This document shows, piece by piece, positions 2,340-64,000 of a stretch of DNA of 64,000 nt. The stretch comes from Dendrobates tinctorius (taxonomy: Eukaryota), in NCBI RefSeq assembly GCF_039654945.1, contig NW_027361690.1:97712001-97776000 (forward strand), in the 5' to 3' direction. Each line of letters starts with the position of its first letter. Within the stretch, counting starts at the first letter, position 1. The translations under genes were made by a program, and so were the position numbers. Under the pieces are notes generated by a model, which had not been told where the DNA came from, did no database searches, and was given only the letters and a program-made list of their open reading frames with translations.

Positions 2340-4845
2340 TCCTCACTCTTCTGGAACTGAGGAGCAACGGGTGACTATTGTAATTTCGCTCCTTCAGGGT
2401 GAACCTGAAGCCTGGGCATATTCTCTTCTGAAGGACTATCAGTTACTTTGGACGGTTGAGATTTTTTTTCAGACGTTGGATCACACATATGATGACCCCA
2501 ATCGCGTCTCCCTGGCTGAGTCTATGCTATGTCAGCTTTGGCTGGAAGAATGGTCAGCAGACGAGTATTGCTGCGAGTTTCAGAGGTGGTCCACTAATAC
2601 TAACTGGAATGACCTCGCAATCTTGCCAGTTCTATCAAGGGTTATCTGTAAGGTTAAAGTATGCCTTTGCTCTTCATAGGACTCCGATCTCCCTTGAGGC
2701 AGCCATGTCTCTGGCCATCTGTGTAGACTGCAGTCTTCAGAGACACTTCAATTTGCAGAGGGCCCGGAGTCAAGGGAACCTGGGTTTAAGTCAAGCGAGG
2801 AACCCATGCAGTTGGACGAGGCATCATGTTGATCCATCGGTAGTTTGGCGTAAAGAGGAATGCATTTCTTCTGTAGTGGAAAGGGTCATTTTGTGGGTGC
2901 TTGTCCTTTCATATCCCACTGTAAACAACCTCTGGAAAACTAAGGAACCCAGGTTGCAAGGAGTTTGGCAACCCGAGTGTACCACTTCCTTTGTTGGTAT
3001 ATCTTAATTTTTCCTACTGGCCGAGATCCATCTTGGCAAAGATTACGTGGTCATTTCTGCCTCTCGACAGTGGGGAGAGATTTAATTTGATCGGCGCTAG
3101 GTTCTTCCATGCTCAAACCACAAATATTGACTGGATCAGTACCCATTATTGCTATTGACTTTCTTACTCAGGTTGTTCTTATGTTGCATTTACAGGTAGG
3201 GGTCATGCACTCTGAATTTAAAGACTTATGTGCTAGAGGGCTAGCCTTCTCTTGTGGTTCTTGAACTTCCTTGGCTTATGCTCCACAACCCTGTGGTAGA
3301 CTGGCAGACTCGGGAGGTGGTGAAATCGAGCGAGTATTGCCAAAAACACTGGGCACCTGGCTAGCCTGGGTGGGTACCCAATCTCTGCCCGATTACCTGT
3401 TTGACTTTGGGGATGTGTTTTCGGAACAGGGGTGTCAAGAACTCCCTCCACATTGTCCTTATGACTGCGTCGTTAATCTGACTCCAGGGGCCAAGCTTAC
3501 AGAGAGCAGATTATACAATATGTCTGGTCTAGAGAGGCAGAAAATAAAAGACTATATTGCTGAAAGTCTGGAAAGAATTATTTCAGACCTTCTTTAACTC
3601 CCAAAACCTACAAGAAGCAAAATAACCATAAACCCTGCTGTAACTAAATAAGTAAAAAGCAAGAGTGCATATACACACCACAGGGTTCCCAGTAATACTG
3701 TTTTTGATGAAAACTAGCATAAAAGCCATCCCATCGTCAACAATGTGACCTGATTGTGATGGTCTAATATTAAAAACCTTACCATGTGTCACAGTTGACC
3801 TCAGTTTGTGAACAAGGGCAAACAAAAGGACTCATCTATCGGGATCTCTCCAACCATTGGCAATTCCCAGTAGACCTTGGATTATTTGTCAGTAGATTTC
3901 ATTACTGATTTACCCGTATCTGCAGATAGTACACTTATTTTGGTGGTAATGGACAGGTTCAGCAAGATGTCTCATTGTGCTATCCCCCTTACCCAACGCC
4001 AAGACTTGGAGCAAATTTTCATCAAAGAAATTGAGAAATTACATGGAATTCCTACAGATATTGTTTCTGACTGGGGATTGCAATTTATTTTCAAATTTTG
4101 GGGATCCATCTGTCATTTTTTAAGCTTTTGTCCCACAGTCTAATGGCCAAACTTAAAATGTTACTCAGAATCTTGAGACTTATCTTAGGTATTTGGGTCT
4201 GATAATCAGGAGGATTTGGTAATTTACTTACCTCTAGCTGAATTCGCGGTGAACATGAGTCTACCGGTTCTCATTAGTCTACTGGTAAGTCCTCGTTCTT
4301 CAAGGCCTGCCGGTTTCATCCTGAGTTCAGCTCTACTAATAGGAATCATTCCTCAGAGAGATGGGGTTCAACTATAAGAGTGTGATTGATCGAAGACATT
4401 TGGTGTGGTTGTCCTCGAGGGACTTTAAGTTAAAGGTCCCTTCCTGGAAACTGTGTCCCAGGTTCATCAGTCCTTATAATATTGTGTCTGTTGTCAATCC
4501 TGCAGTATTCCGTCTTGCCACCTACTTTTAGGATTATAATGTGTTTCACTGGTCTCTGCTCCAAAAATACTTTGCGTCCTTTGAACCATTGCAACCACCT
4601 CCATGTCCGGTCATTGTTGATGAGAATTTGACGTTTCAGACAGCCAAGATATGGATTCTCGCATGGTTAGTCGGTCTCTTCAGCATCTGGTACACTAGAA
4701 GGGTTCAGCATCTGGTACACTAGAAGGGTTGAGGTCCTGAAGAGATAATGTGGAATCTAGCATCTGTTGTCCATGTAGTCAGGCTATTCTGATCCTTTCA
4801 TGCGGCACACCCTGATAGACCTGGCCCTGAGGTCCCTCTTGGAAG
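2340..4845 (+). mobile_element. Degraded Ty3/Gypsy (chromovirus-like) LTR retrotransposon internal region
   Basis: Gag-like VISLLQGEPEAWA...YDDPNR...EY..EF; RT-upstream DFGDVFSE...LPPHCPYDC..NL.PG; integrase LSVDFITDLP...VVMDRFSKM...LHGIPTDIVSD.G.QF; chromodomain-like remnant near 4600-4800; many stops and frameshifts. Confidence 0.88.
3681..3762 (-). ncRNA. Degenerate HDV-like ribozyme (copy C)
   Basis: P1 CCAUC/GAUGG, L3 remnant UUGACG, P4 AUGCUAGUUUU..AAAACAGUAU, J4/2 CUGG, P2 CAGG/CCUG; lies in a non-Gypsy insert (about 3595-3830) inside the Gypsy element. Confidence 0.4.
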
Positions 4846-5674
4846 ACAGCAAGAGAACAACAAGGTTTACCCGTACAGGCCTCCAATCAGGATGCAGTGG
4901 ACCCATATAATAAAGATGGCAACACAGGTGCAAAAATACCAATCAAGCAACTGCTCGCAGCCTACCAATACATGGAGGGGGCAGTTGCCTGGTATGTTGA
5001 TGCACAAAACAACTTGTATGCGGCGCTGTTCACACTAAGGCCATGCACAGCATCCAGGCCAGCCTAGTACCAACACCCTTCTATTAGCTCAGGCGGGCTG
5101 CCCAGCGCTAACAAAATGCATGCCGTGTGAACAGACACCGCAGTCTACAAGACCAAATGGGCCCAGCTGCACCCTGAATAAAACGTGCAAAAAACACATT
5201 TAAAAAAAATGTGGAGTATTAGCTGATATTTTGGCCAAAATACGTGAGCCCGTAACCTACGTCAAAGATCTCCACGTTTACGGGTACCTAACACTAAATA
5301 CTAATACAGTACAGTACAATAAGAGGACTTGAAAATCCTCCAATAATGGAAAACAGCAAGAGAACAACAAGGTTTACCCGTACAGGCCTCCAAACAAATG
5401 CACTATCAGGATGCAGTGGACCCATGAACAGCGCCGCATACAAGTTGTTTTGTGCATCAACATACCAGGCGACCGCCCCCTCCATGTATTGGTAGGCTGC
5501 GAGCAGTTGCTTGATTGGTATTTTTGCACCTGTGTTGCCATCTTTATTATATGGGTCCACTGCATCCTGATAGTGCATTTATTTGGAGGCCTGTACGGGT
5601 AAACCTTGTTGTTCTCTTGCTGTTTTCCATTATTGGAGGATTTTCAAGTCCTCTTTTTGTACTGTGCTGTATTA
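4846..5674 (-). mobile_element. Non-coding retro-insertion (permuted ~510-bp unit plus inverted segment) with 14-bp TSD
   Basis: GTCCCTCTTGGAAG at 4832-4845 and 5675-5688; 4846ff repeated directly at about 5353ff; 5425-5674 is an inverted copy. Confidence 0.8.
5211..5284 (-). ncRNA. Putative HDV-like ribozyme (copy A)
   Basis: Manual fold: P1 CCCGUAA/UUACGGG, P2 GUGGAG/CUCCAC, P3 UCU/AGG, L3 UUGACGU, P4 GUAUUUUGGCCAAAAUAU, J4/2 CUAA. Confidence 0.7.
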
Positions 5675-7074
5675 GTCCCTCTTGGAAGGAAGAGTCAACG
5701 CTCGCACTATAAGAAAAAGACTCTAGATTTGCATGAGCTGGTGATAAGGCCGGCTTGTGCAAATTATTTTATCACGCCCACAGGGACATGACATGGAAAG
5801 AGGGATGAAAAGTCTGACCCCATCAACTAGTCAAAGCCCTCATTAGCATAGGAAACAGGGACAACAATATAATTGCTTTTTTAAAGCATTTATTTAACTG
5901 AATTATGTTAGTTAGGGAGGTCATTCATACACAGGTGAATGCTGCTGGGATAGAGGGCATGGGGGACCCGACAGGTTCCCTGTAATTACTTTTATATTTT
6001 GATACGTTGGACTTTTCCGAATGCCACATATATTTTTTATCTTTGTTTACAATTGGGGAAAAGGGGGTGATTTGAACTTTTAAATTTTTTTTCATATTTT
6101 TATAAAGTTTTTTTTTTTACTTTTCACTAACTTTAGGGGACCTTGACCTGCGATCGTCTAATCACTTATGCTATATACAGAAATACCACAGCATTGGCCT
6201 GACGCAGCTCCTCTGAAGAAAATTTGTAAAACTCTGAGAATTTAACAACATTAAAACAAGTGATATTTTAGTGTGTATTTATATCACAAGATAATAATAC
6301 AAAAGTATATGAAGTTGACATTACTGTTGTGATACTGACCTACAGAATAAATCCAATACTTTTGTGCAGCACAGTGAATAGAGTAAACCTTTTGGTTAAG
6401 TTTTATGTACCTGAAAATGATTCCACTGACAAATACAGCTGATCCTGAAAAAATAAAAAAAGGCATCAAATGACTACGTAGACAAAAGTATAATAAAAAG
6501 TTATGTTCCCCGGAACATGACAATAATAAAGTGGGGAAAAAATAGTTTACCATAAAGGCCAAAATTGGCTGTGACACAAGTGGTTAATCCTGTCTTCTAG
6601 ATCAGTAAAAAATAAGTTGAATAATAGCAGACCCAAAACTGAACCGCATTCTGAGCGGCATGAATGTGAAAGACAGAAAAAAGCTAAATAGTAATATAAA
6701 AACCAATTCAAGAATATTCAGCAGCGTGGAAATGAATAATCTAGATAATGTTAATGGGAATCTGTCAGGTTTTTGGTATGTAATCTGAAGATAGCATGCT
6801 GTAGGGGTTAAAATACAGATTTCAGCAATGCTTCTCTTATCTTGTGGTTTTGGTTGCTTGCAATTATTGTTTTAGTACAAGGAAGTTATCATTGCAACAC
6901 TTACCTCCTGATCAGACTCCACCCCCTCCTGTGATGAGCAGCTCAGAGTCTATAGACATTGTATATACAGAGCCTGGTGTGGGCGGGGGCAGCTTTCTCA
7001 GCTCTGCTTCGTTGCAAAAACATGCCAATCAAATTAACGCATATTGTACCATGCAAATCAAAATAATGGCTTTT

Positions 7075-8990: not shown

Positions 8991-10774
8991 TATTATATCA
9001 TTGGGCAGTGAAGGAAAAATAATTACATTTTTACCACCAAAATTTTGTTTTAGCCTCAGATTTTACACAGGGAAAAACGGCATCAAAATTTGCCCCACAA
9101 TTATTAATGAATGTAGAAATACCCCATATGTGGCTGTGCAGTATTGCTTAGCCATACAGCGAGACTCGGGAGGCACAGATTTTGCTAGAATAGTTTGTAG
9201 ACTCTATATATACAGTAGAGCCCCTAAGTGCTAGAAGAGCAGCAAAATCCCCCCTCAAGCGACCCCATTTGATAAATTATACCCCTTTGGGGATTTATCT
9301 ACAGGTGTAGTGATGATTTTGACTCCAAGGGTGTTTTTAAGAAACAAGCAGCAATCGATGCTGCTGAGTGAAAATTACAAACTGCCATTGTGGTGCCCAT
9401 ATGTGGTAGTGCCCAAATCATGCTTCTGGAGACATGCACCTGCAAGCTAGGTAGGCTGTCATGGCTACAGAGATGCCAAACATGTGGACATTAACCCCTT
9501 CCTGACCTCTGACACCACATAGGCGTCATGAAAGTCGGTGCCAATCCGACCTGTGACGCCTATGTAGCGTCATAGCGAGATCGCGTTCCTGCGGGTCGGG
9601 TGACAGGGGCCACTGAAAGGTCACCCGACCTGCAGGTACATGGGGACTTGTACTTGACCCCGTGGGGGTGGCTTTGCCCCCCCCGTGGTTACGATCGCTC
9701 TGATTGGCTGTTGAAAGTGAAACAGACAATCAGAGCAATTGTAATATTTCACCAATGAAACTTGGTGAAATATTACAATCCAGCCATGGCCGATGATGCA
9801 ATACCATCGGCCATGGCTGGAGACCGTGATCTGCCACCACCGACTGATGGCGGCAAACTGCCCTCGCCACCGAGTGACGACGGCGATATGCCGCCATCTG
9901 TATTTGCTCCCCTCCGCTGTCCGATTCCACCCCTCCCCCGGTACCTCCCGAGTCCCGATGTCCCTCCAGCTTCGGGTCTTCCCCCATGGGCGACGCCATC
10001 TTCTAAAATCGCATGCGCAGTGCGCCCGCCAAGATCTGCCGGCCGGCCCCCGGCAGATTCATTCACTCCAGGTACATTTTGATTACTGTGATAGGGTCTA
10101 TCACAGTGATCAAAATAAAAAAAAAAGTAAATAAACCCCCCCTTTATCACCCCCATAGGTAGGAAAAAATAATGAAATAAAGAAAATATATTTATTTTTC
10201 CATTAGGGTTAGAATTAGAGTTAGGGATGGAATTAGGGTTAGGCGTGTGTTGGGTTAGGGTTATAGATAGAATTGAGGGGTTTCAACTGTTTAGGCGCAT
10301 AAGGGGCTCTCCAAACGCAACATGGCGCCACCATTGATTCCAGCCAATTTTGTCAAATGGTGCTCCCTCCCTTCTGAGCCCTGACGTGTGCCCAAACATT
10401 GGTTTACCCCAACATATGGGGCATCAGAGTACTCAGGAAAAATTGCACAACAACTTTGGGGGTCTAATTTCACCTGTTACCCTTGGGAAACTAAAAAATT
10501 GGGTGCTAAAAAATTAACTTTGTGGAAAAAAAACCATTTTTTATTTTCACAAGGGTAACAGGAGAAATTGGACCCCAACAGTTGTTGTCCAGTTTGTCCT
10601 GAGTACGCGGATACCCCATATGTTGGGGTAAACCACTGTTTGGGCGCATGGCAGAACTCGGAAGGGAGAGAGCACTGTGACTTTTTGAATGCAAAATTGG
10701 CTGAAATCAATGGTGGCGCCATGTCATGTTTGGAGACCCCCTGATGTGCCTAAATAGTGGAAACCCCTCAATTC

Positions 10775-10935
10775 TAACTCAACCTTAACCCCAGCACACC
10801 CCTAACTAACCCCAATCCAACCCTAACTATAACCCTAACCACAAGACTAACCCTAATCGCAACCCTAACCCCAACACACCTCTAACCCTAATCTTAACCC
10901 CAATTCCAACCCTAACCCCAATTCCAACCCTAACA
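10775..10935 (+). repeat. Degenerate (CCCTAA)n array, with mirror TTAGGG array at 10203-10262 and another array at 13800-13865
   Basis: Multiple AACCCT/CCCTAA hexamers interspersed with variants. Confidence 0.8.
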
Positions 10936-11344
10936 GAAAAATAAAAATATTTTCTTTATTTTATTATTTGTCCCTACCTATGGGGCTGATAAGGGAGGGG
11001 GGGGGGGGGGGTGATTTACTTTTTTTTTAATTTTGATCACTGTGAAAGATCCTATCACAGTGATCAAAATGAATGAATGGAATCTGCCGCTGGAAGATTC
11101 GACGGGCGCACTGTGCATGCACCCGCCATTTTGGAAGATGGCGAAGCCCATGCAGGAAGAAGGAGGGACACCGGGAGCGACACAGGGACATAGAAGGTAC
11201 TGGAGGGGGTGAGGATCGGAAGGCAGTGGGGAGCAGAGGGAAGGAGAGCAGATGGTGACGGCGGCAGATCACTGCCGTCAGATGGTGGCGGGGGCAGATC
11301 GCCCCTGTTGGCCGGTGGGGGGGGTCTGATCACTATCTCCAGCC

Positions 11345-15100: not shown

Positions 15101-15928
15101 TGGAATTCAGATGAGACGTACTATAATGTGGCAGCAGAGTTAGGGCGCCGTTACACGCTTCAATGTCCCAGCGATCCCACCAACGATCCGACGTGGATGG
15201 GATCGCTGGGACATAGACTCACCAGCGATCAGGACCAGTGAGCACGCTGGTATCCAGGGTAAACAGCAGGTAACTAAGTGCCGTGCGGCGCTTAGTTACC
15301 CGCTGTTTACCCTGGATGATACCTGCTCCCATCGTCTGCTGTATGGCGCTGGGAGCTCGCTGATCGCTGGTCTCTCGCTGTCACACGCAGCGAAGTGTGC
15401 TGCCCAGCGGGAGACCAATGATGGATTTATGGCCCAGACCATTAGGCAGTGTTTTAGCTGACTTTTTGTACATTGGGATGATAAAGCATAGTTTTTTGCC
15501 TCATTTTTTTTTTTCTACAGTGTTCACTGAAGGTTTTAACTAGTGGGACAGTTTATAGGTTGGGTTGTACTTTTTTTTTTCGTTTACATAAATAAACTTT
15601 ATTGGATTAATATTCTGTTTTCGGTCCTTTTTTTTTTTTTTTTAAAAATACTTCCACAATTTTTATTAATTTTTTTTTCTACTTCTTTATATTGTCCCAG
15701 GATGGGACATCAACTGTACTGTATAATGACAGATCGCTGACCTAATACTCTGCAATGCTTCTGCACTGCAAAGCATTAGAACAGCCCCTGACATGCAGGG
15801 AGGAGGAGTGTCAGCTTGTGCTCTCAGAATGAGCCGACAGGCCACAGTCCCTGGGTGACCCCTCGGCCATCTTGAGGCCCAGGGTCACCATGAAGACCAT
15901 CGACAACGTGATCACATGGCCGTATCTA

Positions 15929-17530
15929 CAGTGGGGCAAAAAAGTATTTAGTCAGTCAGCAATAGTGCAAGTTCCACCACTTAAAAGATGAGAGGCGTCT
16001 GTAATTTACATCATAGGTAGACCTCAACTATGGGAGACAAACTGAGAAAAAAAAATCCAGAAAATCACATTGTCTGTTTTTTTTTCATTTTATTTGCATA
16101 TTATGGTGGAAAATAAGTATTTGGTCAGAAACAAGCAATCAAGATTTCTGGCTCTCACAGACCTGTAACTTCTTCTTTAAGAGTCTCCTCTTTCCTCCAC
16201 TCATTACCTGTAGTAATGGCACCTGTTTAAACTTGTTATCAGTATAAAAAGACACCTGTGCACACCCTCAAACAGTCTGACTCCAAACTCCACTATGGTG
16301 AAGACCAAAGAGCTGTCAAAGGACACCAGAAACAAAATTGTAGCCCTGCACCAGGCTGGGAAGACTGAATCTGCAATAGCCAACCAGCTTGGAGTGAAGA
16401 AATGAACTGTGGGAGCAATAATTAGAAAATGGAAGACATACAAGACCACTGATAATCTCCCTCGATCTGGTGCTCCACGCAAAATCCCACCCCGTGGGGT
16501 CAGAATGATCACAAGAACGGTGAGCAAAAATCCCAGAACCACGCGGGGGGACCTAGTGAATGAACTGCAGAGAGCTGGGACCAATGTAACAAGGCCTACC
16601 ATAAGTAACACACTACGCCACCATGGACTCAGATCCTGCAGTGCCAGACGTGTCCCACTGCTTAAGCCTGTACATGTCCGGGCCCATCTGAAGTTTGCTA
16701 GAGAGCATTTGGATGATCCAGAGGAGTTTTGGGAGAATGTCCTATGGTCTGATGAAACCAAACTGGAACTGTTTGGTAGAAACACAACTTGTCGTGTTTG
16801 GAGGAAAAAGAATACTGAGTTGCATCCATCAAACACCATACCTACTGTAAAGCATGGTGGTGGAAACATCATGCTTTGGGGCTGTTTCTCTGCAAAGGGG
16901 CCAGGACGACTGATCCGGGTACATGAAAGAATGAATGGGGCCATGTATCGTGAGATTTTGAGTGCAAACCTCCTTCCATCAGCAAGGGCATTGAAGATGA
17001 AACGTGGCTGGGTCTTTCAACATGACAATGATCCAAAGCACACCGCCAGGGCAACGAAGGAGTGGCTTCGTAAGAAGCATTTCAAGGTCCTGGAGTGGCC
17101 TAGCCAGTCTCCAGATCTCAACCCTATAGAAAACCTTTGGAGGGAGTTGAAAGTCCGTGTTGCCAAACGAAAAGCCAAAAACATCACTGCTCTAGAGATC
17201 TGCATGGAGGAATGGGCCAACATACCAACAACAGTGTGTGGCAACCTTGTGAAGACTTACAGAAAACGTTTGACCTCTGTCATTGCCAACAAAGGATATA
17301 TCACAAAGTATTGAGATGAAATTTTGTTTCTGACCAAATACTTATTTTCCACCATAATATGCAAATAAAATGAAAAAAAAACAGACAATGTGATTTTCTG
17401 GATTTTTTTTTCTCAGTTTGTCTCCCATAGTTGAGGTCTACCTATGATGTAAATTACAGACGCCTCTCATCTTTTTAAGTGGTGGAACTTGCACTATTGC
17501 TGACTGACTAAATACGTTTTTGCCCCACTG
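15929..17530 (+). mobile_element. Full-length Tc1 transposon of the same family, inactivated
   Basis: TA TSDs at 15927-15928 and 17531-17532, same ~200-bp TIRs, near-identical to 61351-62956. Confidence 0.97.
16295..17314 (+). pseudogene. Tc1 transposase with premature stop
   Basis: ATG at 16295; TCA>TGA at codon 37 (16403-16405); one-codon deletion (ALEIC vs ALEEIC) relative to the intact copy. Confidence 0.93.
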
Positions 17531-17876
17531 TATATGGTGGTTTGTGGTAACGCAGCTCCCAGGGCACCGTATATATACGGCGCATGTCGAGAAGGGGTTA
17601 ATATAAACCATAAAAATATATCAAAAAAATAAATCTGTGTGCAACTGAAAATAAAATTCCGTTTTATGCATACTAATTAGATTTTACGCCAAATAAAAAG
17701 AAAATTGATGTAATACATTACATAGACACTAAAACTGAACACCTTCTCCAACCACCCAGATTTCTCCCAACCCAGGGTGCTTTGCATGCAGGGCCCCAAA
17801 GTGCCCATTCTGGATAGAGTGCAACATTTCCAATCTCGCACCACTGGTACAATGTTTAAAATTAACTGCCGAGTAA

Positions 17877-21250: not shown

Positions 21251-21801
21251 CTACCTGTTTACTAGGGACATGTTATTCTAATTTTTTTACCATATTGATC
21301 GTATAAATTTGCTCTTCCCATCACCACTATGGTGTATATATAAAACTTATTTGCTCAGGTGCCATGTGAACCCATTTTTTTAATTTTATGTAATATTTTG
21401 CTAGCTATTTTAACTATTTAAATTATATTTTTTTTTGTACTTCCCTCTTCTTTGATTCTATTTGGTTACACTGTGGAATAAACAGTAACATCAATTTAGC
21501 TATACTTTTTACTATTGCTTAGAGCATGGTCTAAGAGGCTTCTGTCAGTGCAGCACTGACAGGTATAATGCCCTGCAATACTGGTGCATTGCCATACATT
21601 ATACCAGAGATAAGACTAATAAAGGTTAAAGTCCCATAGAAGGACTAAGGGCCCCGTCACACATAGCAAAGCACCAGCGATCCCGACAACCATATGACCT
21701 TCAGAAAGTTGTGGGAAGCAGGGTGTGTTGCAGTCCGCGATGCAGAGATTCACAAATCACCTGGGATACAAGATGTTGTAGCAGTGTACTCCTTTATTTC
21801 C

Positions 21802-21843
21802 TCCTATGCGTTTCGGCGCCCTTCCTGGCACCTTCCTCAGGGA
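21802..21843 (-). ncRNA. Minimal type I hammerhead ribozyme motif (mirror copy)
   Basis: Reverse-complement copy of 21846-21887 in the other arm of the palindrome, with GAAACGCAUA in place of GAAACACGUA. Confidence 0.75.
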
Positions 21844-21845
21844 TA

Positions 21846-21887
21846 TCCCTGAGGAAGGTGCCAGGAAGGGCGCCGAAACACGTAGGA
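21846..21887 (+). ncRNA. Minimal type I hammerhead ribozyme motif
   Basis: Stem I UCC/GGA, core CUGAGGA-A, stem II GGUGCC/GGCGCC, GAAA, short stem III, GUA cleavage triplet. Confidence 0.8.
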
Positions 21888-23077
21888 GGAAATAAAGGAG
21901 TACACTGCTACAACATCTTGTATCCCAGGTGATTTGTGAATCTCGGCAGCGCGGACTGCAACACACCCTGCTTCCCACAACTTTCTGAAGGTTTTTCCAC
22001 GTGCGAGTGGTTGGTGGAGGTCCTGCAGCAGCTGATTCTGTGATATGCTCTCAAGCCAGTTGTGGGTTACACAACTGGAATAGGTGAGTGGAACTGTATT
22101 ATACCGCTCATACTTCAAGTGTCACTTGTGATAGGGCACTATTGCGCCTCTTGTTCCCCCCACCATTTTTTGTATTAACGATATGACCTTGTCAGGATAT
22201 CAGCACCAGCGACATGTGGGTAACAAGCGATGCACGTCGCTTAGTTACCAGCGTGCTGGTGCAGGGAGCTGGTAACCAAGGTACACATCGGGTTTCTAAG
22301 CGGCGCGCAGCACTTAAAAACCCGATGTGTACCTTAGTTACCAGCTCCCTGCACCAGCACGCTGGTAACTAAGGTACACATCGGGTTTCTAAGTGCTGCG
22401 CGCCGCTTAGAAACCCGATGTTTACCTTAGTTACCAGCGGCAGCTCGCTGGTCTCCCGCCTGTCACATGCAGCGATGCGTGCTGGCCAGCGGGAGACCAG
22501 TGATCACAAAAATGTCCTGGCGATTCCAGGACGATCAGCGATAACCGGCAGGGGGGCCGGTCGCTGATAGGTGTCACACACAGTGATCTCACTGGCGAGA
22601 TCGCTGTTGCGTCACAAAACTTGTGACTCAGCAGCGATCTCGCTAGCAAGATTGCTATGTGTGATGGGGGCTTAAGTAAAAAAATTAAAAAAAAGTTAAC
22701 AAAAATTGGAAAATATTTTAAAAATGTAAACCATTAAAACAGGTATTGTTCGGTAAAATTTTTAAAAAAACACACAATTGGTATCGCTGTGTCTCGCCTT
22801 TCACACTTTTTAAACCCTTCTGTGAAAGCTGTAAAAAAAAAATTAAACAAAAAACATGGCAAAAAAAAAGCTTTTTCATCATTCCGCTGATCAAAAAATG
22901 GAATAAAATGTGATCAAAAAGGCTAATGTAAATATAAATGGTATTCCTGAAAAAGTCATCTTGTCCAGCAAAACAAGCAGCAGTACAGCTTCGTTAGCGG
23001 AGAAATAAAAAAAACTTATAGCTCATAGAATAGAACGATGCAAAAACAATTATTTTTTCTGGCTGTTACCCAGTTAA

Positions 23078-58236: not shown

Positions 58237-59229
58237 TTAAAGGGAATCTGTCACCTACTTTTGGCGGGCTATTTAAATGAGGTCGGTCCGATCCCATGGG
58301 CGGTGTTTCCGATCTTGGCCTCCGTCTGCAGTTTTTTCATGAATAGGAGTAGGCGTCTGCCATTTTTCGAGCGTGCGCTAAGCATTCTTGGCTCGCGCGC
58401 ACACACAGTATACTATTGTCCAACTGCGGGCAAAGCCGAAAAGCCTTACTGCGCATGCGCTGGTTAACTAGGCTCCGGAACACAGCAAAATACTTCCGGG
58501 GCTTAGTTAACCGACACATGCGCAGTCAGGCCGGTTTCACATTAGCGCTTTTTCAGCGCACGCACGGCCGGGGGTAGCTCCGCCCCCGAGCCGGCTCTCT
58601 GCCCGGCGTGCCCGCCCCTTGCTTGTAGCGCCGCCTACTAGCGGACAGCGGCGCCTGCGATCGGGGCACCCTATCTTTAGCATAGGGTGCGCAGATCGTG
58701 CGCTAGTTGCGCTTTGACCTGCGCTGCGCACTTTTGACGGTGCGTCGTGCGCGCCAAAATCAAACTTTTCGGATTTTGGCGCGCACGGCGCACCGTCAAA
58801 AGTGCGCAGCGCAGGTCAAAGCGCAACTAGCGCACGGCCTGCGCACGATCTGCGCACCCTATGCTAAAGATAGGGTGCGCCGATCGCAGGCGCCGCTGTC
58901 CGCTAGTAGGCGGCGCTACAAGCAAGGGGCGGGCACGCCGGGCAGAGAGCCGGCTCGGGGGCGGAGCTACCCCCGGCCGTGCGTGCGCTGAAAAAGCGCT
59001 AATGTGAAACCGGCCTTAGGCTTTTCGGCTTTGCCCGCAGTTGGGCAAAGCATACTGCGTGAGCCAAGAATGATTAGCGCACGCGCGAAAAATGGCGGAC
59101 ACCTACTCCTATTCATGAAAAGACAGCGGCCAAGGATGGGGAGGAGGCAAAGATCGGAAACATCGCCCATCGGACCAGACCAACCTCATTTAAATAGCCC
59201 GCCAAAAGTAGGTGACAGATTCCCTTTAA
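58237..59229. mobile_element. TTAA-flanked MITE (AGGGAATCTGTCACC TIR) containing a nested near-perfect palindromic MITE (58529-59015)
   Basis: TTAAAGGGAATCTGTCACCTACTTTTGGCGGGC ... GCCCGCCAAAAGTAGGTGACAGATTCCCTTTAA; inner GGCCGGTTTCACATTAGCG ... CGCTAATGTGAAACCGGCC. Confidence 0.85.
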
Positions 59230-59964: not shown

Positions 59965-60481
59965 TTACAGAGGTACGAGAAGCACTGTCTCCCGATGGTG
60001 CTCATGAATCCAGTCCTGCTTGGCTTGAGTGCGCTGGAACGTGTAAGCAGTCCTTTTTGTAGATTCCTCAGGGATAGCGCTGCACAAGAACTGTGGGCAC
60101 GCTCACAGACCGCGGCAGTGGGCGGTCCTCTGGAGTAGTCTCTAGGAATGGAGTGAGTCAGCTTATCTGCAACTGTAGGCAGGGAAGAGTTGTCCAAAGA
60201 GGCAGAGTCAGGAGTCAACTCAGTCGTGACACAGTCAACTTTTAATTATAGAAGGATAGGGAAAATGAAGGGAGGTCAGCTCACCAGTCTCGGTTGCGAT
60301 GCATAATCCTCCTGCGCACGGAGTCACCTTGATCAGGGGTGTTGACTGAAGCAAAATATAGGATGGAATCTCCAGCGCTGGACTTCAGTTAAAAATACAT
60401 CATTTATTGTAAATTCTTAAAATCGAACAGAAAAAAGTGTGGATAAGGACATACAGGCAGATGGGGTCTCTGGTGGTCTCC

Positions 60482-60520
60482 AACTAACGCGTTTCGACCT
60501 AGAGGGTCTTACTCATGGTT
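60482..60520 (-). ncRNA. Minimal hammerhead motif, A3-U8 variant (mirror copy)
   Basis: Reverse complement AACCAUGAGUAAGACCCUCUAGGUCGAAACGCGUUAGUU, with one stem I mismatch. Confidence 0.68.
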
Positions 60521-61350
60521 CACACTAGACCAATACTGACGACTACAAATAGTACAAAAACTAGTAAATCACAGGTGTTGGACAAAAGAATTAATGAAAA
60601 TAGGGAGTATCCCTACCAGTTAACTCTTGCAAACACTCAGCCTAATGTGGAGCTGAAACAAAAACTAGTCGGAAAAACAGGAAAAAAAAAAAAACTAATA
60701 AAAAGATATCATAAGAATATAATAACAATCACAAAAATTATCAGAATAACCAGAATTGAATAGGACTAAGTAGAATGTAAATATACAGAAGAAAATATCA
60801 ATCTAATTGCAATATTAAATCAAGTGGTTTGTTCAGACCTAATGGTACTCTTGTATTTAATTTAAAAATCCAAAAGGATTCACGATTTAATAATTTTCTC
60901 CTGAAATCACCTCCCCTAGTAGATCTATAGACTTTCTCTATTGCTATAATTTTGAGACTATCAGTTTTACCTCCATGAACAGTTTTACAATGATAAGAAA
61001 CTGCTGAAATATTATAATTGCTACTAGTAGCTTCTGACAAGTGTTTCCTAATTCTCTTTTTAAGAGGTCCTATTGTACAGCCTACATATTGTAGGTTACA
61101 AAAAACGCATGTCATATAAAGGCTTTTCCAAATGTGGACATCATCCCTGTAAAGTCTGCAACTATGTGGTTAAAACCAGCAGATTCACTTCTACTGTTAC
61201 TGGCATATCATACCCTATTCAGTCTCACATAAATTGTAATTCAGAAGGAGTAATATATGTTATTGAATGCGTTTTTTATGTAGGCTGTACAATAGGACCT
61301 CTTAAAAAGAGAATTAGGAAACATTTGTCAGAAGCTACTAGTAGCAATTA

Positions 61351-62956
61351 CAGTGGGGAAAAAAAGTATTTAGTCAGTCAGCAATAGTGCAAGTTCCACC
61401 ACTTAAAAAGATGAGAGGCGTCTGTAATTTACATCATAGGTAGACCTCAACTATGGGAGACAAACTGAGAAAAAAAAATCCAGAAAATCACATTGTCTGT
61501 TTTTTTTTCATTTTATTTGCATATTATGGTGGAAAATAAGTATTTGGTCAGAAACAAAATTTCATCTCAATACTTTGTGATATATCCTTTGTTGGCAATG
61601 ACAGAGGTCAAACGTTTTCTGTAAGTCTTCACAAGGTTGCCACACACTGTTGTTGGTATGTTGGCCCATTCCTCCATGCAGATCTCCTCTAGAGCAGTGA
61701 TGTTTTTGGCTTTTCGCTTGGCAACACGGACTTTCAACTCCCTCCAAAGGTTTTCTATAGGGTTGAGATCTGGAGACTGGCTAGGCCACTCCAGGACCTT
61801 GAAATGCTTCTTACGAAGCCACTCCTTCGCTGCCCTGGCGGTGTGCTTTGGATCATTGTCATGTTGAAAGACCCAGCCACGTTTCATCTTCAATGCCCTT
61901 GCTGATGGATGGAGGTTTGCACTCAAAATCTCACGATACATGGCCCCATTCATTCTTTCATGTACCCGGATCAGTCGTCCTGGCCCCTTTGCAGAGAAAC
62001 AGCCCCAAAGCATGATGTTTCCACCACCATGCTTTACAGTAGGTATGGTGTTTGATGGATGCAACTCAGTATTCTTTTTCCTCCAAACACGACAAGCTGT
62101 GTTTCTACCAAACAGTTCCAGTTTGGTTTCATCAGACCATAGGACATTCTCCCAAAACTCCTCTGGATCATCCAAATGCTCTCTAGCAAACTTCAGATGG
62201 GCCCGGATATGTACAGGCTTAAGCAGTGGGACACGTCTGGCACTGCAGGATCGGAGTCCATGGTGGCGTAGTGTGTTACTTATGGTAGGCCTTGTTACAT
62301 TGGTCCCAGCTCTCTGCAGTTCATTCACTAGGTCCCCCCGCGTGGTTCTGGGATTTTTGCTCACCGTTCTTGTGATCATTCTGACCCCACGGGGTGGGAT
62401 TTTGCGTGGAGCACCAGATCGAGGGAGATTATCAGTGGTCTTGTATGTCTTCCATTTTCTAATTATTGCTCCCACAGTTGATTTCTTCACTCCAAGCTGG
62501 TTGGCTATTGCAGATTCAGTCTTCCCAGCCTGGTGCAGGGCTACAATTTTGTTTCTGGTGTCCTTTGACAGCTCTTTGGTCTTCACCATAGTGGAGTTTG
62601 GAGTCAGACTGTTTGAGGGTGTGCACAGATGTCTTTTTATGCTGATAACAAGTTTAAACAGGTGCCATTACTACAGGTAATGAGTGGAGGAAAGAGGAGA
62701 CTCTTAAAGAAGAAGTTACAGGTCTGTGAGAGCCAGAAATCTTGATTGCTTGTTTCTGACCAAATACTTATTTTCCACCATAATATGCAAATAAAATGAA
62801 AAAAAAAGACAATGTGATTTTCTGGATTTTTTTTTTTCTCAGTTTGTCTCCCATAGTTGAGGTCTACCTATGATGTAAATTACAGATGCCTCTCATCTTT
62901 TTAAGTGGTGGAACTTGCACTATTGCTGACTGACTAAATACTTTTTTTCCCCACTG
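61351..62956 (-). mobile_element. Full-length Tc1/mariner DNA transposon, apparently intact
   Basis: TA|CAGTGGGG...CCCCACTG|TA, with ~200-bp terminal inverted repeats and a complete transposase ORF. Confidence 0.97.
61567..62589 (-). CDS. Tc1 transposase, 340 aa, DD34E
   Basis: N-terminal paired-like HTH region and GAPRK linker, [25 protein letters not shown]; 34 residues between the second D and the E; no stop codons. Confidence 0.96.
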
Positions 62957-63429
62957 TATAATATTTCAGCAGTTTCTTATCATTGTAAAACTGTTCATGG
63001 AGGTAAAACTGATAGTCTCAAAATTATAGCAATAGAGAAAGTCTATAGATCTACTAGGGGAGGTGATTTCAGGAGAAAATTATTAAATCGTGAATCCTTT
63101 TGGATTTTTAAATTAAATACAAGAGTACCATTAGGTCTGAACAAACGACTTGATTTAATATTGCAATTAGATTGATATTTTCTACTGAGTCCTATTCAAT
63201 TCTGGTTATTCTGATAATTTTTGTGATTGTTATTATATTCTTATATCTTTTTATTAGTTTTTTTTTTTCCTGTTTTTCCGACTAGTTTTTGTTTCAGCTC
63301 CACATTAGGCTGAGTGTTTGCAAGAGTTAACTGGTAGGGATACTCCCTATTTTCATTAATTCTTTTGTCCAACACCTGTGATTTACTAGTTTTTGTACTA
63401 TTTGTAGTCGTCAGTATTGGTCTAGTGTG

Positions 63430-63468
63430 AACCATGAGTAAGACCCTCTAGGTCGAAACGCGTTGGTT
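63430..63468 (+). ncRNA. Minimal hammerhead motif, A3-U8 variant
   Basis: Stem I AACC/GGUU, core AUGAGUA-A, stem II GACC/GGUC, GAAACGCGUU. Confidence 0.72.
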
Positions 63469-64000
63469 GGAGACCACCAGAGACCCCATCTGCCTGTATG
63501 TCCTTATCCACACTTTCTTCTGTTCGATTTTAAGAATTTACAATAAATGATGTATTTTTAACTGAAGTCCAGCACTGGAGATTCCATCCTTTATTTTGCT
63601 ACAGTCAACTTTTAGAGTGAGTACACCAGGGAATGGATGGCGTGGGGTGAGCAGTCGGAGAGGGAGTCAACCTTCTCTTGTCGCTTTCCCGCCAAGTCTC
63701 CTTCCTTCCCGCGCTCAGTCCTCTTTTTATATTCCCCGCGCCCCCTGTTGTCCAGCGTGAAGGTCCTCCCCCAACAGGGGTGACAGTCCCGATAGTTCTG
63801 GCCCCAAAGGGCACCGGAGACCGTTGACTCTGTCTCTGCTCATCTTCTTACATATGGATGACCGTTCTTATAATTTTGCTTCCTGCCTTTGAGTGTAGAA
63901 GTACATTGACTACACTTTGTCCACAAAATTTTAATGATGCACTCCATTTGGTGCCTTCAAGGGTGCATGGATGACCGTCCTTATAATTTTTTTTTTTTTT

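Follow-up and report, generated by a model that had tools for sequence, protein, structure and literature searches.

Probable Penelope-type origin of a permuted, partly inverted repeat insertion with a predicted HDV-like fold in the frog Dendrobates tinctorius

How does a small non-coding insertion come to start inside its own repeat unit, run past the end of that unit into another copy, and finish in an inverted copy, all between two identical copies of its target site? This question is raised by a locus at positions 4832-5688 of a 64,000-nt stretch of Dendrobates tinctorius DNA (contig NW_027361690.1, forward-strand positions 97,712,001 to 97,776,000; hereafter the window, to which all coordinates refer). 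A sequence-only reading had described this locus as an insertion with a fold like that of the hepatitis delta virus (HDV) ribozyme, and had ascribed it to reverse transcription that ran more than once around a circular or multimeric RNA and then switched strand. The odd layout (permuted, more than one unit long, inverted at one end, and bounded by a long target-site duplication, TSD) is the ordinary signature of insertion by a Penelope-like element (PLE). We consider it probable that the insert arose in a single Penelope-type retrotransposition of a non-autonomous, non-coding repeat with units of ~519 nt, whose RNA sense lies on the minus strand.

The insert is 829 bp long and is enclosed by two copies of the TSD GTCCCTCTTGGAAG at 4832-4845 and 5675-5688 (14 bp each, no strand assigned). 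These are identical at 14/14 positions, as the sequence-only reading had stated, and by simple arithmetic such a match has a chance of ~4^-14 per placed pair. The insert holds no meaningful open reading frame (ORF): none exceeds 94 aa, and none is uninterrupted by the inversion joint. There are no runs of N in the window, and BLAST found no further copies of the unit in its 64 kb. We refer to the unit as it reads on the plus strand as U, and to its reverse complement, which is the RNA sense, as S. Sequence self-comparison and the majority letters of the repeat family delimit one full unit at 4846-5352 (minus strand in RNA sense), which is 507 nt long here and ~519 nt in the family. The recurrence of the unit at 5353 that had been noted earlier is real: the second copy, 5353-5425, consists of the first 61 nt of U again plus 12 extra nt, AACAAATGCACT, that are missing from the first copy at 4846-5352. 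In RNA sense (minus strand), these 73 nt are the last 73 nt of the preceding unit, so that this partial upstream unit makes up the partial-tandem or "pseudo-LTR" (pseudo-long terminal repeat, pLTR) part of the insert. Full unit and partial upstream unit are contiguous and form an unbroken stretch of 580 nt with a period of ~519 nt.

The rest of the insert, 5426-5674, is an inverted, 5'-truncated arm of 249 nt with its RNA sense on the plus strand. Its reverse complement reads U457-507 followed directly by U1-187, again with the 12 nt, and on the RNA it covers S321-S519 and then S1-S51; it thus crosses the unit junction, just as had been proposed. Four substitutions and the 12-nt indel separate the arm from the first copy, and 1 substitution separates it from the second head (5353-5425). 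The two arms meet head-to-head at the inversion joint 5425|5426, with T5425 as the single common base. At its outer end, the inverted arm carries a 51-nt stretch on the plus strand (5624-5674; BLAST self-match U455-507 = 5676-5624) that lies past the outer end of the direct arm and includes an 8-bp stem-loop at S12-S31 (window 5635-5654) in the predicted minimum free energy (MFE) fold. Read along the minus strand, the order is therefore an inverted 5'-truncated copy, a partial upstream copy and a full unit. The same order is given in a published description of PLEs (PMC8557442), and another account describes a head-to-head inverted pLTR together with a TSD and a tail (PMC3846280).

The repeat family to which the unit belongs, for which our data are assembled contigs of sequencing runs rather than individual reads, places most of the differences between the arms in the first copy. 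In the best DNA run 2107 contigs match the unit, with a depth over the unit of 1e4-8e4, whereas the flank has ~50-400; a second frog species likewise has the family in abundance. Since the 12-nt block is present in other family copies, its absence from the first copy is private to that copy, and a loose contig end, ACAAATGCACT, at 4886 further supports the private 12-nt deletion after that position. The first copy also carries at least three private substitutions (4983, 5310 and 5320) relative to the family majority. Because these account for 3/4 of the differences between the arms, both arms fit one template sequence followed by ~2% later decay, a fit that is the same whether the template was circular or a multimeric transcript, or was copied by end-to-end jumps. 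Four other joints between opposite strands were found in three runs, all at different positions, so the rearrangement is not unique to this locus; the insertion style is a family trait and not a local accident.

The geometry of the insert also fixes the orientation of its RNA. If reverse transcription (RT) is primed from the 3'-OH ends of the target, then the strand joined to 4845 (plus, 4846 to 5425) and the strand joined to 5675 (minus, 5674 to 5426) are the two cDNAs. Both are U-sense, which makes the RNA their complement S, found on the minus strand in the left segment. The HDV-like fold described below lies on the minus strand as well, in the RNA sense that the insertion geometry demands, and is thus an independent line of evidence for this orientation. 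On this RNA the two RT starts fall at S519 and S51, 51 nt apart and flanking the 8-bp stem-loop. The predicted ribozyme cut is 68 nt downstream of the former and 17 nt downstream of the latter, and the first cDNA crosses the uncut ribozyme site. The left primer, TGGAAG, has a possible partner in UUUCCA, immediately 3' of the first RT start on the RNA, with which it can form 5 Watson-Crick pairs and 1 G-U pair, and the right primer (the complement of 5675-5688) shares 2 nt (AC) with the template.

From the segment map, the TSD, this orientation and the identical geometry of a coding PLE elsewhere in the window, we infer an enzyme, an order of events and a template as follows. A PLE protein with RT and GIY-YIG domains, acting in trans, would nick both target strands 14 bp apart, and each 3'-OH would prime RT at an internal site of an RNA containing more than one unit. 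As template, a multimeric transcript that its ribozyme had not cut is the likelier candidate, and a circle the less likely one. From 4845, the plus-strand primer, proposed to be the 3' end TGGAAG of the left TSD copy, would start at S519 and copy the full unit, pass through the uncut ribozyme site and add 73 nt of the unit before it. From 5675, the minus-strand primer, proposed to be the complement of the right TSD copy, would start at S51, which lies 51 nt nearer the RNA 3' end, and copy 249 nt. The two cDNAs would then meet head-to-head at 5425|5426, each serving as second-strand template for the other, and fill-in of the 14-nt stagger would produce the TSD. These steps resemble what is reported for the Anolis PLE protein in vitro (Frangieh et al. 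2024), which cleaves and extends both target strands, begins RT at two neighbouring internal sites, the distance between which corresponds to the genomic "tail", and uses unprocessed multimeric RNA, ribozyme cleavage being dispensable (PMC11167929). The 51-nt interval between the two RT starts of the insert would be analogous to this PLE tail.

The best comparator within the window is the coding PLE, a 5'-truncated insertion at 60231-63614 that is bounded by a 14-bp TSD, ACAGTCAACTTTTA, and extends over both arms at 60245-63600. Its left arm (60245-61088) has coding sense on the minus strand and its right arm (61089-61349 and 62959-63600) on the plus strand. The right arm is interrupted at 61349-62958 by a Tc1/Sleeping-Beauty-like DNA transposon with an uninterrupted 340-aa transposase ORF (HTH_SB, HTH_Tnp_Tc3_2, DDE_3), terminal inverted repeats of ~209 bp and junctions TA|CAGTG...CACTG|TA. 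With this transposon removed, the PLE arms are 95.8% alike. GIY-YIG-like ORFs of PLE type, with weak Pfam matches, lie on the minus strand in the left arm and on the plus strand in the right arm, so that coding sense points outward in both, as target-primed reverse transcription from both strands predicts. The left arm extends 96-105 nt further out than the right arm, which itself runs 9 nt into the TSD (63601-63609 vs 60341-60349, ACAGTCAAC/GTTGACTGT). This overlap suggests that the second PLE primer annealed by a 9-nt microhomology, 96-105 nt upstream of the start of the other arm, which differs from the non-homologous initiation reported in vitro. The PLE fragment lacks the 5' part and the pLTR. 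It shares with the insert that carries the delta-type fold a 14-bp TSD, inverted arms, outward sense and unequal outer ends. The architectural match between the two insertions that the sequence-only reading had pointed out therefore holds, and shared PLE-type machinery is its best reading.

This geometry also bears on the earlier proposal that the reverse transcriptase switched strand, which did not survive comparison with the arms. A switch of the enzyme onto the insert's own cDNA (snap-back) is excluded, because past head position 1 the inverted arm enters the unit tail and not the left flank, and because it contains the 12 nt that are absent from the first copy. Both features agree with a second cDNA that had the other target strand as its primer. 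Self-templated snap-back was rejected for the PLE in the window as well, each of whose arms has end sequence that the other arm is without. The other half of the proposal fared better: the template did contain more than one unit, given 580 nt of continuous copy over a period of ~519 nt, but a circle is not required to explain this, as such partial tandems also arise in ORF-bearing PLEs, whose templates are multimeric, unprocessed transcripts (PMC8557442, PMC11167929).

Several observations weigh against a Penelope-type origin. The outer ends of the insert differ by 51 nt (a figure taken from one insertion only), vs a published tail of 30-40 nt, and its target is not AT-rich, unlike the preference of the Anolis PLE. 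In vitro, PLE RT starts without homology to the primer, but here 5-6 nt are common to the left primer and the template, and the PLE right arm has a match of 9 nt. No PLE gene for RT or endonuclease is linked to the unit family here, and a comparison of the unit with the 3' kb of the window's one PLE copy gave no similarity above shuffles. The hammerhead, which is the usual ribozyme of PLEs and retrozymes, was not found at the Rfam gathering score in the window nor at E<=5 in 4700-5800. Lastly, none of the runs containing the unit is on record as RNA.

The closest rival is the earlier proposal with its strand switch replaced. It holds that a ribozyme-processed and ligated circular RNA (an "HDV-type retrozyme") was copied by rolling-circle RT, with the inverted arm resulting from a second priming on the same kind of circle. 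Such a circle would account for a first cDNA of more than one unit that is continuous past the ribozyme cut site, for two RT starts that are both internal and permuted relative to the cut, and for a unit RNA predicted to be very stable (z = -4.86), as in retrozyme or viroid-like circles. Yet nothing here requires a circle: partial tandems of this kind are also formed by coding PLEs 3-4 kb long, and the substrate used in vitro is unprocessed multimeric RNA, with ribozyme mutants inserting equally well. No run on record as RNA contains the sequence, so that no back-joined RNA was seen, and cleavage of the unit is a prediction. We therefore regard this rival as unlikely. Its fuller form would be a true "delta-type retrozyme", in which the fold cuts unit RNAs, these are ligated into ~519-nt circles, and a Penelope RT copies the circles in rolling-circle fashion from both nicked strands. 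To this we would give a slightly better, though still low, chance, and if it were true, a single PLE-dependent life cycle with circular RNA would, in vertebrates, use either a delta-type or a hammerhead ribozyme as an exchangeable module.

Two further rivals were considered. In the one, the unit would be a passenger, like a short interspersed nuclear element, of a long interspersed nuclear element (LINE; L1/L2/RTE-like) that carries an HDV-like ribozyme, and the inversion would come from classical twin priming. Twin priming of L1 also yields 5' inversions and TSDs of similar length, and it is in LINEs (R2, RTE, L1Tc), but so far not in PLEs, that HDV-like ribozymes have been described. Against this, no poly(A), microsatellite or 3' tail of the LINE kind is present at either outer end of the insert; as a partial tandem, the element exceeds one unit, which LINE passengers do not; and its ribozyme is not at the 5' end of the element. 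Moreover, the PLE in the window, with the same geometry, copies the same RNA region almost completely in both arms, which twin priming on one RNA does not do, and we find a LINE-type origin improbable. More improbable still is that a one-unit insertion was later rearranged locally, by duplication and fold-back inversion during replication or repair. In its favour are the instability of palindromic DNA and the divergence of the arms (~2% plus a 12-nt indel). However, one clean 14-bp TSD encloses the whole composite, the PLE 55 kb away repeats this architecture, as do the other inversion joints of the family, and the inverted arm joins the unit tail to a 199-nt head, whereas the head in the direct part stops at 73 nt and so leaves no local source for the copy.

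What sets the insert apart from a typical PLE product is the ribozyme class of its passenger, which by prediction is HDV-like. A single double-pseudoknot fold occurs in the insert, at 5209-5284 on the minus strand, where it was located from a pair table, a signature and the register of a covariance model. It lies inside the unit and not at the insertion end, in agreement with the sequence-only reading, which had named no strand for it, although the strand matters for the orientation argument above. We number it so that n equals 5285 minus the window position. P1 pairs n 1-7 with n 30-36 (CCCGUAA/UUACGGG, 7 bp), P2 pairs n 10-15 with n 69-74 (GUGGAG/CUCCAC, 6 bp), and P3 pairs n 17-19 with n 27-29 (UCU/AGG, 3 bp). 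L3 is n 20-26 (UUGACGU), P1.1 is one pair of reversed polarity (G22-C37), P4 is a hairpin with an internal loop at n 39-62, and J4/2 (CUAA) begins at C63 (window 5222), the candidate catalytic C. The nested double pseudoknot P1/P1.1/P2/P3/P4 has the canonical order and sizes, and every P1, P2 and P3 pair forms in this copy. The predicted cut lies between 5285 and 5284 (RNA S68|S69).

The evidence for this fold is comparative, since a structure-only HDV descriptor is not specific (~300 window matches vs ~130 in shuffles) and is useless as evidence alone. Two folds of a unit at 51 kb in the window serve for the comparison; BLAST found no similarity of our unit to the 51-kb unit, in line with the sequence-only reading, which had seen none evident outside the motif. 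Relative to these two folds, 10 double compensatory changes are spread over P1, P2, P3, P1.1 and P4, with no P1-P3 pair broken in this copy. The signature TTGGCCA-N9-CTAA occurs exactly 3 times in the window, each time at one of the three folds, and the CUAA between P4 and P2, with the candidate catalytic C63, is kept in 3/3 folds. A covariance model built from the three folds aligns this copy in the same register and finds only those three in the window, with none in the PLE fragment or elsewhere in it. Among the well-supported family majority differences from this copy that we listed, those at 4912-5184 and 5301-5368 are dense and only one, at 5256, falls within 5185-5300; it turns U17-G29 into U17-A29. 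This sparseness across the fold region is suggestive only.

We would like to note that assigning the fold to the HDV-like class has points against it. Searches against Rfam, at the gathering score for all 64 kb and at E<=5 for 4700-5800, yielded no HDV, hammerhead or other ribozyme match, so that no curated covariance model matches the fold; the Rfam matches that did occur were limited to chance microRNA-like ones arising from the inverted repeat. The canonical G1-U37 wobble at the cut and the two-pair G-C P1.1 (C in L3, G after P1) are replaced here by C1-G36 and the single reversed pair G22-C37.

The unit RNA is unusually stable by prediction (z = -4.86, 0/100 shuffles as good), as would be expected of a structured RNA, although the same holds for the opposite strand. 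In the predicted MFE structure, UACGGGUA near the RNA 3' end (4868-4875, minus strand) pairs with UACCCGUA (5286-5279), its perfect complement, which spans the predicted cut. This pairing may form an alternative helix that masks the ribozyme, in the manner of HDV attenuators. At source loci with tandem units, the HDV-like fold would serve to cut out RNA of unit length; the present copy, with its single fold, cannot release a unit.

A small insert whose RNA sense is fixed independently provides a clean genomic footprint of two-strand, internally initiated RT, which has so far been shown only in vitro, and for one lizard PLE. PLEs and animal retrozymes have been described as hammerhead carriers, and an abundant frog family keeping an HDV-like fold in the same place would add a second ribozyme class. 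The predicted cut 5285|5284 and the candidate catalytic C at 5222 would make an easy assay target.

Some further features of the window were recorded alongside these. The left flank of the insert holds a perfect 25-bp tandem duplication at 4679-4728; one contig from a DNA run matches 4704-4832 with 0 substitutions and 25 gapped letters, and the duplication may be polymorphic or paralogous. The left flank looks repeated itself, with other contigs ~82% alike. A second element with long terminal inverted repeats lies at 15907-17552 (arms 15983-16134 and 17324-17475, 100% complementary) and is probably another young Tc1-like copy. Further fold-backs are present at 58237-59229, 21697-21992 and 10136-11000, with ~500-nt arms, a 148-nt palindrome without a spacer, and nested hairpins; no clean TSD was found around these hairpins within 150 bp.

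Among known systems, L1 twin priming resembles the insert in that two target 3'-OH ends prime two cDNAs that are joined head-to-head within one TSD. It differs in that the L1 arms are adjacent and non-overlapping and derive from an RNA with poly(A), whereas the arms of the insert and of the PLE in the window overlap and there is no poly(A). The HDV-like ribozymes of LINEs (R2, RTE, L1Tc; PMC3185411) have the same double pseudoknot with a P1 of 7 bp, a P3 of 3 bp and a C in J4/2, and L1TcRz, which cleaves, likewise has a single-pair P1.1 and a G then a C after P1 (G+37 and C+38 in L1Tc). In contrast to the fold studied here, which sits inside a tandem unit, has C-G at the cut and matches no Rfam model, they are found at the 5' end of a coding LINE and have a G-U wobble at the cut. 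The literature searched contained no account of a PLE or retrozyme with an HDV-like ribozyme, so the insert would represent an apparently unreported delta-type variant in a PLE-type insertion.

Metazoan non-LTR retrozymes (PMC7229834; bioRxiv 10.64898/2026.07.22.740005) are likewise small non-coding units, abundant in amphibians, in tandem or dispersed copies with TSDs >4 bp and with a self-cleaving ribozyme per unit, to which the predicted fold of the insert would correspond. They are thought to be PLE-dependent derivatives of pLTRs (PMC7229834; bioRxiv 10.64898/2026.07.22.740005). Their ribozyme is a type I hammerhead, whereas that of the insert is HDV-like, their units are 170-400 nt long rather than ~519 nt, and expression as linear and circular unit-length RNA belongs to their definition, whereas circles and cleavage would be predictions for the insert family. 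PLEs themselves (Penelope/Poseidon clade; PMC8557442, PMC3846280, PMC11167929) differ from the insert in carrying hammerheads and not an HDV-like fold, and in tail length and target composition as given above; their TSDs are 8-10 bp in rotifers vs 14 bp here, and the insert lacks an RT/GIY-YIG ORF and is thus non-autonomous. In its construction, the insert is like them: a partial tandem (pseudo-LTR) with a head-to-head inverted 5'-truncated copy, a single TSD round the composite, unequal outer ends that may correspond to a tail and, by the proposed mechanism, internal RT initiation with both strands primed and a ribozyme site left uncut in the template.

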